DNA from: Chlorokybus atmophyticus
Lineage: Eukaryota; Plantae; Mesostigma and Chlorokybus algae
Direction of reading: 5' to 3'
Length of the DNA: 64,000 nt
NCBI GenBank assembly: GCA_009103225.1
Contig: RHPI01002533.1
Location: 1,369,186 to 1,433,185, forward strand
A program made the position numbers and the translations under genes. This document shows, piece after piece, positions 54,398 through 60,099 of the stretch. Position 1 is the first letter of the stretch. Each line of letters starts with the position of its first letter. Under the pieces are notes generated by a model. The model saw only the letters and a list, made by a program, of their open reading frames with translations, did not search any database and was not told the origin of the DNA.

Positions 54398-56123
54398 TCA
54401 ACTACTCTCATTCGAAGTGGCTGTGGCGAAACTACTATTACTACGGTGGCGCATGGCCAGCAGCGAGTCCAGGCCAAGCTCATCCAATTCATCATCGTTG
54501 TCCACCATTGGCGGTGGCATTGCATTGGCGGTTGCGGATGGAGAAGAGAACAGGCTCATGGGTTGATGGTCGGCAAACGGTGCCGTGTTGTTAATGGTGG
54601 TGGCAGCGGCAGCAGGGGCGATGCTTGCGCGATTGAGGGCTTCCTGCAGCGCCGTGATCTCGTCCTGCTTGCGCTGGATCTCCTCGCCGCGCTGCGTGAG
54701 CTCCTTCGTGTGGATCTTAAACACCTCTGACCAAGCAGCAACAGGACAGACAGTGGTGTGTCAAGAGGCCAGTCTGGCGGGGTGGTGGGGGCCATACAAG
54801 CTGAAAAGAGAGAGAGAGGTGGCGTACCGCTGGTGGATTCAAGCTGTTTTTCAAGGTCTGCAGCATGCTCTTCGGCCTTGCGTTGCGCAAACTGCGCCTC
54901 CTGGCGCTCCTATCACATGCGCATGCAACCACCGACCCAAGTCATCACAAACGTCGTGAGAGGAAGTTCTCAGGCAAAGATCATGCATGCTGTCTGGTCA
55001 ACAACCCACACTGATGGTCGCAATCGTGCTTGCTCTTGTAACATACCCTGCGCGCGACCTGCGCAGCGGCCAGCGCCTCGTCTAGCTCTCTGCCCAGCAC
55101 GTCCACCTTACGCTCCAGCTCCTGAACACACCAACAGCATCAAGCAGCAACCAAAATACAGCCCCTACCCTGCAATATGCAAACAGAGCGTGCAGAGTAT
55201 CTCCCCCCCCCCCCCCCCCCCTCCCTTCCCCACAGAACGTACTCAAATGCACAAACAGTCCGTATGGGACTGATTACGGGCATGCTGTGACAGTGCACAC
55301 AGGCCAAACCCTCCATGCAAAGTAGAGAGGCAGTAAACGTGCATGCATGTGAGCTGAGATAGTGCAAGCAGTTTCCTGGGTTAGGGTTAGCCTGCCCCTT
55401 ACCCTAATCTTGCGTGCGAGGTCTGCGGCGGTGCGTTCTTTGGCATATCGTCCCTCTTCCAAGTAGACCGCGCCCTCCATCACACGCTGCAACCTCTGAA
55501 ACGCGCGCGACATCTGCACGGGCATCGTTCTCAGCTCGCGTGGAGCACACGAAAGCTTGCGATAACTTGTACGCTTGAGGAAGCCATGAGGCAAAGAGCA
55601 ATATGGCAACTGTGCAGGATTTACGCACACCACAAAACTGTGGCTTGCAAAGTAGCAGCATGCTTCATGCATGACGAGTCATACGGAAACGCCTCACTGT
55701 TGTGCGATTGCATGCAATGCTTGGTTAAAGGAGGCAGACGCACCTCTTCCACATTGTCGACGGCGTCGTGCCACCGCTCGCTGCTGAAGCCTTCGCTGCC
55801 CGCCGCCGCGCAGGCGTTGTGGGCAGGCTGCTGAGGCTGTCTGAGGCTGTTCGCGTTGGCATGCTGCTGCGTGGGGCGGTAGTCCTGGGAGATTGACGAC
55901 GACGGCGATGGGCCGCCTGCGTCGCTGCCGCCGCCGCCGCCGCCGCCGGGAGCTGTGTATAAAAACTGCGCCGACCACAACAGTCAAGTAAACATGACGA
56001 TGCTGGCGGCTGATCACACAGGACAATTCTCACCCTAAATCCTGGGTCAGTGGATGGGATGGCGGCACCGCTGCCGCTGGCACTGCGACGATGATTGGGC
56101 CTGGCCGCCGCCGTCCCCGCCAT
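54398..56123 (-). CDS. Hypothetical coiled-coil protein, about 6 exons
   Basis: Phase-consistent exon chain from ATG 56123 with donors at 55744, 55403, 55059 and 54828, acceptors at 55573, 55121, 54909 and 54726, and stop at 54398. Heptad-like ELERKVDVLGRELDEALAAAQERQEAQ. Confidence 0.7.
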
Positions 56124-56947: not shown

Positions 56948-58378
56948 ATGGTGAGTGCACTGCATCACAGCCGCCGCCACTGGTATGTACACACAGGGCT
57001 GAATGCGATCACGGGGTGGCTGTGACACGTTGATGTTGACAAGGGTGGTCTCAACTCGATCTGCTGTCTACTACTGCATGGTGATCTGGCATCGCACGCG
57101 CACAAACAGCACATGCCGGGTCTTGTCGCCATGTATGTGAAACCCATACAACAATATATACACTGGTCGAGGCTTGGTGCTAACAGAATGTCACCTCGGA
57201 GCGTCTGTTGTCACACGATCCCTTGCTCCATTCTTTCATCACCAATGACGCATGTGATGTGTTCATGCTTGCAGAACCTGTCTGTTCGTTTGCGGGAGCG
57301 GGAGGGTCCCCTCGCCCGCCTCAAAGTCCCCTTGACCGTCCCTCTGATCGGTCTCCGCCTCGGCGTGGGCGCGACGGCCGGCGCCTCCGAGGGCGTATCC
57401 TTGCACGCGGGCGGCTTCTTCTCCGGCATCTCCTGGCGCGTGCAGGCCCACCCGTCCTCATCCTCCTCATCCTCGGCGTTGCGCGTGTTGGCGAAGACGG
57501 CGTTGGGCGGCAGCGACGGCGGGAATGCTTTACGATTGGCCGCCGAGTACGACGTGAGGTCCAGACAGACAAAGGTGACGGTGAGGTTCAAACCGAGGCT
57601 GGGAGCGCTGTCGTTACGCCATTCGCATTGCACGGACTGCGCGCATGGAGGAGTCGCAATCAAGTCACCCACACCGCACAACGCACCCAAACCCGCGACA
57701 CAACAAGATCTGAGACACATACACATGCATGGAGCGGAGACCAGCAGTCAGGGGCTTGTGCGCGCAGCACCCACGCCCACCACGCGGCCGGTCGGGGCCA
57801 CGGGAACAGCAACCACAACGACACCTCATGTGGACAGCCACACACCCTCCACGTCTGGATCGTCAGGTGGACTGATGCAGCTTGCGACGACGGGGTTGAA
57901 TCGTACCGACTGCTGCCTGCACCTGCACAACATCGTGCCGCTCGGAGACCGCGCGTGGTTCAAGATCAGGTGGGCGGTCGCCATGCCGACGGAACTGCTC
58001 TTTGGGGGACCAAACAGCCAAACACTCGCGAGGTGACACACGCACACCCTCTCGCGCTTTTGCTGTCGCACACACGCGCACGTGAACACACACGCATGCT
58101 TGCAGGCGCGCGTGGGTGGGGCTCACGAAGAACGCGTTCGTGAGGCTGGACAAGGTGTCGCTCGTGCACATGAAAGACAGGTGAGAGTCAATCGCATCGC
58201 TGCAAAGATGTCGCGTGTCTAACGTGTTTGTGTTGATGATGTCAGGAGCATGGCGAACCAGTTGTTGTGCACTCAATGCACCGCGTCTCCAGGCGTGCGC
58301 GAGATCGCGCCGTCGGGTCAGCCGTTCGACCATCTCGCAAAAACATACCGCAGCATGGTAAACGCCATTGGACTCTGA
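56948..58378 (+). CDS. OEP40: Chloroplast outer envelope protein 40-like beta-barrel pore
   Basis: Exons 56948-56950 (ATG only), 57275-58032, 58106-58180 and 58246-58378. NLSVRLREREGPLARLKVPL, RFKPRLGALSL, KIRWAVAMPTEL and FVRLDKVSLVH align with recalled At3g57990 blocks. Confidence 0.75.
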
Positions 58379-58588
58379 CAACCGCACATCAGGTTGGTCA
58401 TAGGTCATAGGGTCATCTTCTTAACGCGCATCGCAGGAAGTTTGTTCACAACACAGTATGCACGTTGATAGGCGGTACAGTGTCAATGAGGTCCTGCTGC
58501 TGTGGGTCAAGCCAAGGCCGTCTGTGCGCTGCTATAGTATAGTCGTCCCCTGTTCCTAGATGATCAGATAGTGCATCTCAAGGATGCA

Positions 58589-59644
58589 ATGGGTGCAAGC
58601 AATCTGACATTCGTGAGTGACTGCAAGCGCAGCCAAAGTCATCACAAATTGCATTGCATCTGCAAGCTCATCACCAGCAACGTCTGGTGAAGCTGGCAAT
58701 CAACTTTTGTGTTCCGCATGGGCTGAACGCAATGCAGCATGCGTCGATTCTGCTAGTGGGTGACAAGTACTGTGATGAATGACACACATGCAGTTCGCCA
58801 GTGTAGTACTAGAAGAATGCATCGCAAGTCACATGCGTGTAAGAGTGCATCTTTGCTGACGTGCATGGGTCTGTGCGCAGCGCGCCCCGGGTCCGCTGCG
58901 TAGCGTGCGCAAAGACCTCCTCCCCGAGCTCAAGGTAGGCGCGAGCATGCATATGCAGTATGCGGATGGAGCCACAGCCTACCCTGTCTCAGACCTTTGA
59001 AGCTGTTGTGTGTTCAGGCGGTGACATTGGCGCAGTGGCTGCTTGAGAGCGGTCGCGGGAACAGCCGCCTCTCCGCACACCACTGCAACTACGGAGGACT
59101 CAAGTGGAGACAAGAAATGGGTCAGTGGCTCTGCTGCCTGTTGTGGATCAAAGCACAACAACTCTACTTCAAGAGCAAAGCAGTTGCTGACTGAGTTTGG
59201 TGTGCTTTAGCGGGGCTAGCCATTCCAATTAGGTACGGCGCGCACGACGGCCACGACCTGTACTGCAGCTTCCACAGCAACAAAGACTTCATCAAGGGAT
59301 TCTGGAAGGTGGTGATGATGATGATGATGATGATGATGGTCATGGGAATTGCCAACCGAGAGATGACTGACATTGGCGTACTTGCAGTTCCTTGCAAAGC
59401 GACCATACACTGGCTGGCAGAAGCACATCGCATCAACCACCCGTACCAATGTGAGCCAGGCCTTCATCGAGCTCATCCACAGGTAAAAGGCGTAAACACG
59501 CAAGCTCTACAGGTATTGACCGTCGTTGTTGTTGCTGCTTGACATCTCTGCCTGTGCAGACGTGGATATGCCACCGACCCGCATTATGTGAACAAAGTCA
59601 TACAGCAGCTGCCAGAGGCTCGCAGGCTGCTGGGCCAAGTGTAG
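58589..59644 (+). CDS. GH73 (FlgJ/glucosaminidase-type) peptidoglycan hydrolase with spliceosomal introns
   Basis: Exons 58589-58612 (tentative first), 58881-58934, 59018-59120, 59211-59308, 59388-59482 and 59560-59644, all GT-AG and phase-consistent. The protein contains AVTLAQWLLESGRG (catalytic Glu), NYGGLKWR, YCSF..FIKGFW and YATDPHYVNKV. Confidence 0.88.
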
Positions 59645-60099
59645 TGTATAGATATGCACGTGACGTATGCAACATGCACGACACATGCATGGACACTTAA
59701 CCACAATCACACTCACCTCTATCACGACCACCGGGCTAGGTGCACACTACTGTGCTTCTGTAATAGTCAGTTGGGAAAGGTGCCTGGGCCTTTGCGTGAT
59801 AGTATGCAAATGGTACGAGTGGCCCTGTGTGGCACGACTTAAGTACATAGCAACTGTGTACAGTAGCCTTCAATTGATCGTGATACACCCTGCCGAGTGC
59901 ATAATATATGCAATGCTGTGCATGTGGCAGTAGTGCTAGGCGGTGTAGGATGTGCCTTTTGTCAACAATGGTTGATTTTGCGTGCTTACTGAGATTGTCT
60001 TGAAAGTTCGCTGTGGGACGCACTATGCCCTGCGGGATGGTGGAGCATAGCAGAAAGTGCACGCATGCATGCGCGTCCTCATACACGGCACAAACAGCA

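Follow-up and report, generated by a model that had tools for sequence, protein, structure and literature searches.

We have identified in Chlorokybus atmophyticus a transcribed nuclear gene with spliceosomal introns, the C-terminal part of which is a GH73 (endo-beta-N-acetylglucosaminidase-type) domain. The domain is encoded at positions 58881-59644 of a 64,000-nucleotide (nt) stretch of contig RHPI01002533.1 (positions 1,369,186 to 1,433,185 of the forward strand), hereafter the window, and the gene to which it belongs is considerably larger. The domain was probably acquired before the split of Chlorokybus and Mesostigma, since Mesostigma has the same two-part protein. The explanation that we rank first, a reasoned lean to which we give a probability of about 0.42, is that the gene encodes a fused peptidoglycan glucosaminidase acting on the plastid wall. 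On the whole, the domain is real, expressed and anciently acquired; an earlier interpretation made from the letters of the DNA (the sequence-only reading) had placed the domain correctly and had modelled the 5′ end of the gene wrongly.

The sequence-only reading had proposed six exons with GT-AG borders, and the rebuilt model has 459 nt (152 residues); exon numbers used here follow that model (exon 3, 59018-59120; exon 4, 59211-59308; exon 6, 59560-59644). The exons 58881-58934, 59018-59120, 59211-59308, 59388-59482 and 59560-59644 have GT-AG borders and consistent phases. Transcript data were assembled contigs of two runs (X1 and X2), which belong to two studies, one of 2013 and one of 2021. 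Among them, spliced contigs of 1,345 and 1,949 nt match the window with zero mismatches, and they contain the junctions 58934/59018, 59120/59211 and 59482/59560 (the slash marks a splice border). The junction 59308/59388 is implied by continuous numbering of the contig records; it is not listed directly because a (GAT/ATG)n microsatellite at 59309-59340, at the start of intron 4 (gtggtgatgatgatgatgatgatgatgg…), was masked as a repeat in read mapping. Four of the five introns proposed earlier are borne out by transcripts, while the proposed first exon (58589-58612, MGASNLTF) and its intron are absent from the contigs.

In both runs the contigs join 58392 to 58881 and continue further 5′ with the junctions 58180/58246 and 58032/58106. 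It follows that the transcription unit is longer and begins 5′ of 58000, with the GH73 exons at its 3′ end. The domain is joined to the upstream exon 58246-58392, and the stand-alone protein of ~150 residues first envisaged has to be given up; the longer 5′ end that had been allowed for is what the contigs show. As no contig ends or runs unspliced past 58392, no separate 3′ end of an upstream gene is visible, and the intron 58393-58880 is covered by one low-depth piece of 170 nt only (58632-58801). The length of the X1 contig implies a leader of at least ~400 nt before the predicted start codon at 56948. On the 3′ side the contigs reach 59741-59750, with more pieces up to 59921.

Pfam scans were run exon by exon; the whole spliced protein was compared by alignment and by a subfamily profile. 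Profile PF01832 (Glucosaminidase, GH73) matches exon 3 at profile positions 17-44 (E-value 1.8e-5, 25.8 bits) and exon 6 at profile positions 103-117 (E-value 0.043, 14.9 bits), so that the order of the two exons is the order of the profile; the same exons match the NCBIfam models GsmA and FlgJ. The curated PF01832 cut-off (30.2 bits) is exceeded by a truncated public model of the gene (31.8 bits) and by the Mesostigma orthologue (41.5 bits), both described below. Against a subfamily profile built from 91 bacterial and phage relatives the spliced product scores 173 bits, which, along with the exon matches, bears out the GH73 assignment made from the letters. When aligned by BLASTP, the spliced product and the N-terminal module of a GH73-amidase protein from Rhizobium show 51% identity over 127 residues (E-value 6e-44), and this alignment is gap-free at all four internal exon junctions. 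Neither the GH73 domain nor the splice model 3′ of 58881 could plausibly be due to chance. A phmmer search of the PDB with exon 3 alone gave no match.

Forty-two columns are conserved at ≥85% among the prokaryotic relatives; Chlorokybus keeps 36 of these and Mesostigma 34. The catalytic Glu of the (A/L)ESG motif, invariant in 91/91 relatives, stands in LLESG in Chlorokybus and in MHESS in Mesostigma, and the profile alignment places it on the LESG Glu of Salmonella FlgJ. The Tyr of the YATD motif (RGYATDPHY) is also kept; it is conserved in 90/91 relatives and aligns with YATDP of FlgJ and TM0633. GH73 enzymes have a second acidic residue on the beta-hairpin, Glu223 in Salmonella FlgJ. The algal domain has this hairpin; in the Mesostigma model it consists of strands 441-448 and 451-458 and bears HD at its tip. 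Its alignment to the EYE motif of FlgJ is uncertain by one or two residues and gives no clear counterpart of Glu223, the nearest acidic candidates being the Asp of AHDG, kept at the hairpin tip, and a Glu that is Gly in Chlorokybus.

The predicted structure of the Mesostigma protein has a per-residue confidence (pLDDT) of 84-98 over residues 371-529, the GH73 domain. The top Foldseek matches of this domain model are all GH73 or GH73-like chains (FlgJ, Auto, AtlA and TM0633) together with a type VI effector. The part of the model with pLDDT above 90 is what matches FlgJ, Auto and AtlA. The predicted fold, lysozyme-like and alpha-helical with a beta-hairpin lobe, is the same as that of the characterised GH73 enzymes FlgJ (5DN4/5DN5, 2ZYC), Listeria Auto (3FI7), Enterococcus AtlA (7QFU) and Thermotoga TM0633 (4QDN), with Foldseek probability 1.0 and TM-scores of 0.52-0.65 normalised by target. 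These enzymes share the catalytic Glu of the ESG motif and the YATD Tyr with the algal domain; their sequence similarity to it is marginal (best profile E-value 7e-7).

The gene has a public model. A search with 57275-58030 gave one match, at 100% identity, to the EukProt protein jgi/Chlat1 Chrsp1S03051 (399 residues; P0025 in our collection), for which PF01832 is recorded; because the public annotation carries this Pfam tag, the GH73 domain was already visible in databases. Chrsp1S03051 merges the region upstream of the domain, the front part, with the domain via an acceptor at 58292/58293, which the contigs do not use and which adds 34 off-frame residues. It then goes from a donor at 59232/59233, inside exon 4, to 59560, skipping the exon 59388-59482 and most of 59211-59308. 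Both features are contradicted by the transcript contigs. The present analysis corrects this model, from which 57 residues of the catalytic domain, beta-hairpin included, had been dropped.

A search with the GH73 region of the public model retrieved the Mesostigma viride protein Mv18370-RA.1 (529 residues; P0026). Its first ~384 residues are homologous to the Chlorokybus front part (residues 1 to ~330 to the exon 57275-58032), and its last ~145 residues make a complete GH73 domain. The junction of the two parts in Mesostigma, …YKKM/RMGF…, corresponds exactly to Chlorokybus …YRSM followed by a phase 0 donor, ATG/GTAAAC, at 58357/58358. This donor joins 58881 in frame, and the resulting 460-residue fusion model aligns with the Mesostigma protein from end to end (E-value 4e-108; domain identity 61-64%). 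In the alignments a 6-residue insert is common to both algal domains and occurs in no prokaryotic relative.

A further clue comes from the motif FxxLAxxY. Sixty of the 93 sequences of the tree described below have it ahead of TLAQW, at a distance of 21 residues (20 in two rows). Both algae carry it in their front-part frame (FDHLAKTY and FASIARDY), ~10 residues further out; it is absent from the alternative frame that can be read through the junction exon, called ORF2 below (ORF, open reading frame). This suggests that the transferred segment begins before the 58357/58881 junction; for continuity across that junction it is this short motif alone that speaks, as the HMMER bacterial profile does not extend so far, owing to an insert of ~10 residues. 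We infer that the fusion is the conserved product in Chlorokybus as well, and the choice between donors 58357 and 58392 would then decide whether the enzyme is made as a fusion at all.

The donor observed in the contigs, 58392/58393, lies 35 nt downstream of 58357/58358. On the observed transcript the front-part frame (ORF A) has 322 residues, and the GH73 domain is in the -1 frame, where the first AUG, at 58276, would give 183 residues including a 39-residue Arg-rich extension; assembled contigs cannot prove that one molecule carries both ORF A and the GH73 frame. GC content at third codon positions (GC3) in successive upstream exons is 0.84, 0.80, 0.96 and 0.71 when the front-part frame is read and 0.36-0.58 when the GH73 frame is read (0.84 and 0.80 for 57275-58032; 0.96 against 0.36 for 58106-58180), and these high values identify the front-part frame as the upstream coding frame. 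The GH73 exons have GC3 of 0.64-0.83 in their own frame, with no stop or frameshift across all five. The -1 frame relative to the front part is open for 501 codons on the observed transcript (57184-59641 spliced), if 57184-58032 is intronless. So long an open frame probably comes about through the high GC3 of the true one, and it can mislead gene finders into single-ORF models. Frameshifting by -1 in the overlap was also considered and rejected: by reading of the sequence, the sole A-run (GCAAAAACA) is not a canonical slippery heptamer.

The relatives of the domain are bacterial and phage proteins. A tblastn search of exon 3 against plasmids found two Rhizobium leguminosarum genes (67.6% and 63% identity) encoding 388 and 354 residues, with an N-terminal GH73 domain and a C-terminal Amidase_3 or Amidase_2; tblastn of these Rhizobium proteins on the window found no amidase module and no second GH73 copy. 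An exhaustive profile search gave 1,776 proteins at E-value ≤1e-3 and 207 at ≤1e-30, and Mesostigma was the only recognisable eukaryote among the best 150 of the 1,776 matches. The prokaryotic scan, with one genome per species, gave 149 loci, mostly from Cyanobacteria (Nostoc, Scytonema, Symploca and others) and Alphaproteobacteria (Rhizobium, Bradyrhizobium, Methylobacterium, Caulobacter and Sphingomonas). In every bacterial relative scanned the GH73 domain stands at the N-terminus with a further wall-hydrolase module behind it (Amidase_2 or Amidase_3, sometimes together with M23 or LysM). The single exception to amidase pairing is a Nostoc protein with only a weak M74-like match, and the likeness to amidase-associated glucosaminidases noticed in the sequence-only reading has proved to be well founded. 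The best identity to any prokaryotic sequence is ~53%.

A maximum-likelihood tree was built from an alignment with 93 rows and 140 columns. It places Chlorokybus and Mesostigma as sisters (100/98) at the end of a long stem and unites the algal pair (96/86) with three metagenomic GH73-amidase proteins, P0131, P0148 and P0123. The contig of P0148 is phage-like, with matches to PHROGs for an HNH endonuclease, a resolvase and a methyltransferase. Both P0148 and P0131 match PHROG endolysin families, and P0131 lies among small unannotated genes of the same direction. Among deposited phages the best match is the endolysin of Thiohalocapsa phage LS06-2018-MD04 (37% identity). An endosymbiotic, cyanobacterial origin had been considered for the gene; since the algal pair groups with lysins and is not nested in any cyanobacterial clade, such descent is left without support. 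A phage or bacterial lysin is most likely the source, as judged from a tree of 140 columns with long branches.

The lysins (for instance Rhizobium pRL10 QIJ44785.1 and WP_168304197.1, the Thiohalocapsa phage endolysin, P0131, P0148 and P0123) belong to the same GH73 subfamily as the algal domain. The two groups have in common the motifs TLAQWxLESGRG, NFGGLKWR, AHDG-x-x-YC-F, GYWxF and YATDP-Y and are 45-53% identical over the whole domain; the lysins have no signal peptide. They differ in architecture: in the lysins GH73 is N-terminal and followed by an amidase, whereas the algal domain lies at the C-terminus, is no longer paired with an amidase, contains a 6-residue insert, is interrupted by introns and follows an unrelated front part of ~320 residues.

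Some bacterial members of the subfamily have unusual arrangements. One locus (L086:8001-11246) encodes a 1,081-residue protein with Amidase_3, two GH73 copies of the same subfamily and ankyrin repeats; its neighbours include S8 and trypsin-like peptidases, two caspase-like C14 peptidases, CHAT and a TIR_2 protein, and the region looks like a conflict or cell-death island, to judge by these domains. About ten more representative proteins (1,065-1,216 residues) have two matched stretches at similar positions and may share this architecture. A tight clade of Nostocaceae (18 rows, 100/100; L047, L048, L051 and 15 other loci) has PSEPQP-like residues in place of the AHDG hairpin motif, and the one member that was scanned shows a weak match to an M74-like endopeptidase at its C-terminus where others have an amidase. 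On the Rhizobium plasmids a DUF3616 gene lies directly downstream of the GH73-amidase gene in L002:1-6096 and one gene further in L001:1-6102; one of the plasmids has an S8 peptidase upstream of the GH73-amidase gene, and none of these plasmid proteins has an obvious signal peptide.

The front part bears on where the protein may act. It has no Pfam family match; a word-index search finds only its own public model, and phmmer against the 175 collected relatives finds none. It shows no signal or transit peptide. Its N-terminus, which is conserved from residue 1 and predicted to enter a strand at residue 2, is therefore unlike a cleavable presequence. The whole front part is predicted to be all-beta with long strands (pLDDT 36-55), and the low-confidence model retrieves almost only membrane beta-barrels: TamA, BamA, OEP21 (a chloroplast channel), VDAC and Tom40. 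Language-model features point to DUF7781, a green-plant family, and to organelle barrel families, all below the level that would make them more than a lead; with one Chlorokybus exon alone the features gave nothing barrel-like. To our knowledge, membrane barrels of eukaryotes are confined to the outer membranes of organelles. The complete gene set for peptidoglycan synthesis is present in all streptophyte algae (PMC7455551). Given both, a barrel-anchored hydrolase facing the plastid wall would be coherent.

The mechanism that we favour can be outlined as follows. A GH73 domain would have been taken up before Chlorokybus and Mesostigma diverged, would have lost its amidase module and would have been joined behind a beta-rich green-algal region of ~320 residues. 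The working protein would be the in-frame fusion of ~460 residues made via donor 58357/58358. It would cleave the bonds between N-acetylglucosamine and N-acetylmuramic acid (GlcNAc-MurNAc) in peptidoglycan, with the LLESG Glu as the acid and the beta-hairpin (AHDG) closing the groove. The front part, a weakly predicted membrane-type beta-meander, would anchor the protein in an organelle outer membrane, and the enzyme would trim the alga's own plastid peptidoglycan. A more specific version makes it a glycan-cutting hydrolase held in the plastid outer envelope by a barrel, the first glycosidase of plastid-wall turnover, with two donors 35 nt apart in Chlorokybus switching between barrel-only and barrel-hydrolase products and so dosing a potentially self-damaging enzyme; in this full form we judge the proposal unlikely.

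Several observations weigh against a fused enzyme on the plastid wall. The contigs of both runs use donor 58392/58393, after which the front-part frame stops at 58376-58378; with this frame-breaking donor in use, the fusion isoform was not observed in Chlorokybus, although a minor fusion isoform would not show, as assembly retains no more than the dominant path. In Mesostigma the fusion is known as a gene prediction. The Glu that adjoins the hairpin Tyr in Mesostigma, and commonly in the bacterial relatives, is replaced by Gly in Chlorokybus. The front part matches no Pfam family, and its models have pLDDT of 36-55, with Foldseek E-values no better than 9e-3 and TM-scores of 0.2-0.33, and for these reasons the membrane barrel is only a lead. 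A plastid role would lead one to expect the gene across the green lineages that keep Mur and PBP genes; in searches with length and word limits only Chlorokybus and Mesostigma were found among eukaryotes, and no homologue in other streptophytes that keep peptidoglycan, which makes a general plastid role unlikely.

The main rival, also unlikely in our view and still the strongest of the alternatives, is antibacterial defence, in which a domesticated lysin module would attack bacteria on or in the alga and the front part would be a targeting or binding module. GH25 lysozymes were transferred to plants and insects. A protein combining PF01832 with NlpC/P60 is reported to have been acquired by the rumen fungus Neocallimastix (PMC7379824), so that the algal gene would parallel other peptidoglycan hydrolases that eukaryotes obtained from bacteria. 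As in those cases, a bacterial wall-lytic domain is kept as a eukaryotic nuclear gene; the algal one differs in that its fusion partner is a beta-rich region specific to the lineage and lacking a secretion signal, and in that two algal classes long separated have it in common. The domain is closest to lysins, of which at least one is encoded on a phage-like contig, and to multi-module wall hydrolases that serve bacteria in lysis; some relatives lie in bacterial conflict islands, and a spread over two algal genera fits an accessory trait. What speaks for housekeeping is the two-part architecture, kept since the split of Chlorokybus and Mesostigma. Expression in ordinary culture transcriptomes of two studies, the lack of a signal peptide and the conserved N-terminus with its predicted beta-strand also argue against a defensive enzyme.

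Two other readings take the observed transcript at face value. In the first, the messenger RNA (mRNA) is bicistronic: ORF A stops at 58378, and a separate 183-residue GH73 protein (ORF2) starts at AUG 58276 with its 39-residue extension as a possible organelle presequence. Both contigs show exactly this arrangement, ORF2 is open from 58276, and the extension has 10 basic residues and one acidic. Polycistronic mRNAs are documented in green algae (PMC7896298, PMC11291117), likewise as one spliced transcript with two long open frames. The Chlorokybus locus differs from them in that the frames overlap by 103 nt, ORF A is long, nine AUGs precede ORF2 and an alternative donor would fuse the frames. 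The nine AUGs between the ORF A start and 58276 argue against leaky scanning. The shared exon has a GC3 of 0.71 when read in the front-part frame but of 0.51 when read as ORF2, which makes the extension unlike selected coding sequence; Arg-rich peptides are to be expected from off-frame reading of GC-rich coding DNA, and the Mesostigma gene is annotated as a fusion. With that many preceding AUGs and such a GC3, efficient bicistronic translation looks unlikely, and we hold this reading to be distinctly less probable than defence.

In the second, the locus is a recently silenced remnant: a shift to donor 58392 would have uncoupled the domain, now untranslated in the 3′ untranslated region (UTR) and not yet decayed. 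The sole isoform seen does have a stop upstream of the domain. Yet the five exons show neither stop nor frameshift and retain coding-like GC3 (0.64-0.83), 36 of the 42 conserved columns and both the catalytic Glu and the catalytic Tyr are kept, and the in-frame donor GTAAAC is intact, so that this reading appears very improbable. Bacterial contamination or an assembly chimera, for which the ~50% identity of the domain to bacterial proteins might be cited, is refuted by the spliced contigs, in which five spliceosomal introns are removed and the domain is spliced to an upstream algal exon; with the 100% EukProt match, an orthologue in Mesostigma and a best prokaryotic identity of only ~53%, the gene is nuclear and intron-bearing, as the sequence-only reading had held.

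The features of the locus are listed in Table 1. Between the GH73 gene and a minus-strand gene at ~55400-56120 there is a C-run of ~20 nt and a telomere-like motif, gggttagggttag, facing its near-complement, ccttaccctaatc (55200-55232 and 55378-55412).

Table 1. Features of the GH73 gene of Chlorokybus atmophyticus in window coordinates (slash, splice border or corresponding junction)
Feature	Position	Strand	Evidence and remarks
Predicted start codon	56948-56950	+	At end of 5′ exon, donor ATG/GTGAGT; public model starts M/NLSV, Mesostigma protein MNASL
Large front-part exon	57275-58032	+	Conserved beta-rich N-region, variable low-complexity linker, start of second conserved region
Front-part exon (…GLTKNAFVRLDKVSLVHMKD)	58106-58180	+	Both junctions in X1 and X2 contigs
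Junction exon as observed	58246-58392	+	Contigs; front-part frame stops at TGA 58376-58378; AUG 58276 opens GH73 (-1) frame
Exon 1 of the sequence-only reading	58589-58612	+	Within 488-nt intron 58393-58880; in no contig
Linker exon (RAPGPLRSVRKDLLPELK) into GH73 domain	58881-58934	+	Contig junctions on both sides; matches Mesostigma RMGFPCLKGISSSQLHDLK
GH73 exon with catalytic Glu (AQWLLESG) and NYGGLKWR	59018-59120	+	PF01832 match, bacterial identity
GH73 exon, beta-hairpin (…IRYGAHDGHDLYCSF…)	59211-59308	+	In contigs; gap-free alignment to bacterial relatives
GH73 exon with 6-residue insert	59388-59482	+	In contigs; insert otherwise only in Mesostigma
Last coding exon (RGYATDPHYVNKV…)	59560-59644	+	Stop TAG 59642-59644; 3′ UTR to at least 59750; FlgJ C-terminal motif

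A survey of 2012 based on CAZy recorded GH73 in none of 42 eukaryotes (PMC3541169). In the literature searched, no paper was found that joins GH73 with streptophytes, nor glucosaminidase with Mesostigma or Chlorokybus, in agreement with the earlier remark that no GH73 had been described in the turnover of the plastid wall. Beyond the public Pfam tag, we found no description of the domain, of the conserved fusion or of the splice problem. The gene is not the sole candidate for a hydrolase of that wall: DipM, a peptidoglycan hydrolase of the LytM type on which the division of chloroplasts in Cyanophora and Physcomitrium depends, is already known (PMC4015805), though no enzyme that cuts glycan is. 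Like DipM, the GH73 gene encodes a bacterial-type wall hydrolase in the nucleus of plants that keep plastid peptidoglycan, and the same role is proposed for it. The two differ in that DipM is a peptidase of cyanobacterial descent present in glaucophytes, charophytes, mosses and a lycophyte (PMC4015805), whereas the GH73 product, a predicted glycosidase, is not demonstrably cyanobacterial and was seen only in Chlorokybus and Mesostigma.

The finding concerns an early-branching green alga that retains an old acquisition, the target of which may be the thin wall of its plastid or bacteria. Plastid peptidoglycan is known in glaucophytes, streptophyte algae and mosses, and the enzymes of its turnover are barely known; we know of no glycan-strand-cutting enzyme assigned to it. 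With its conserved and expressed GH73 domain, this gene of the earliest-branching streptophytes offers a concrete candidate for the turnover of plastid glycan strands. If the enzyme is defensive instead, it would be an old case, from the green lineage, of a bacterial wall hydrolase adopted by a eukaryote.

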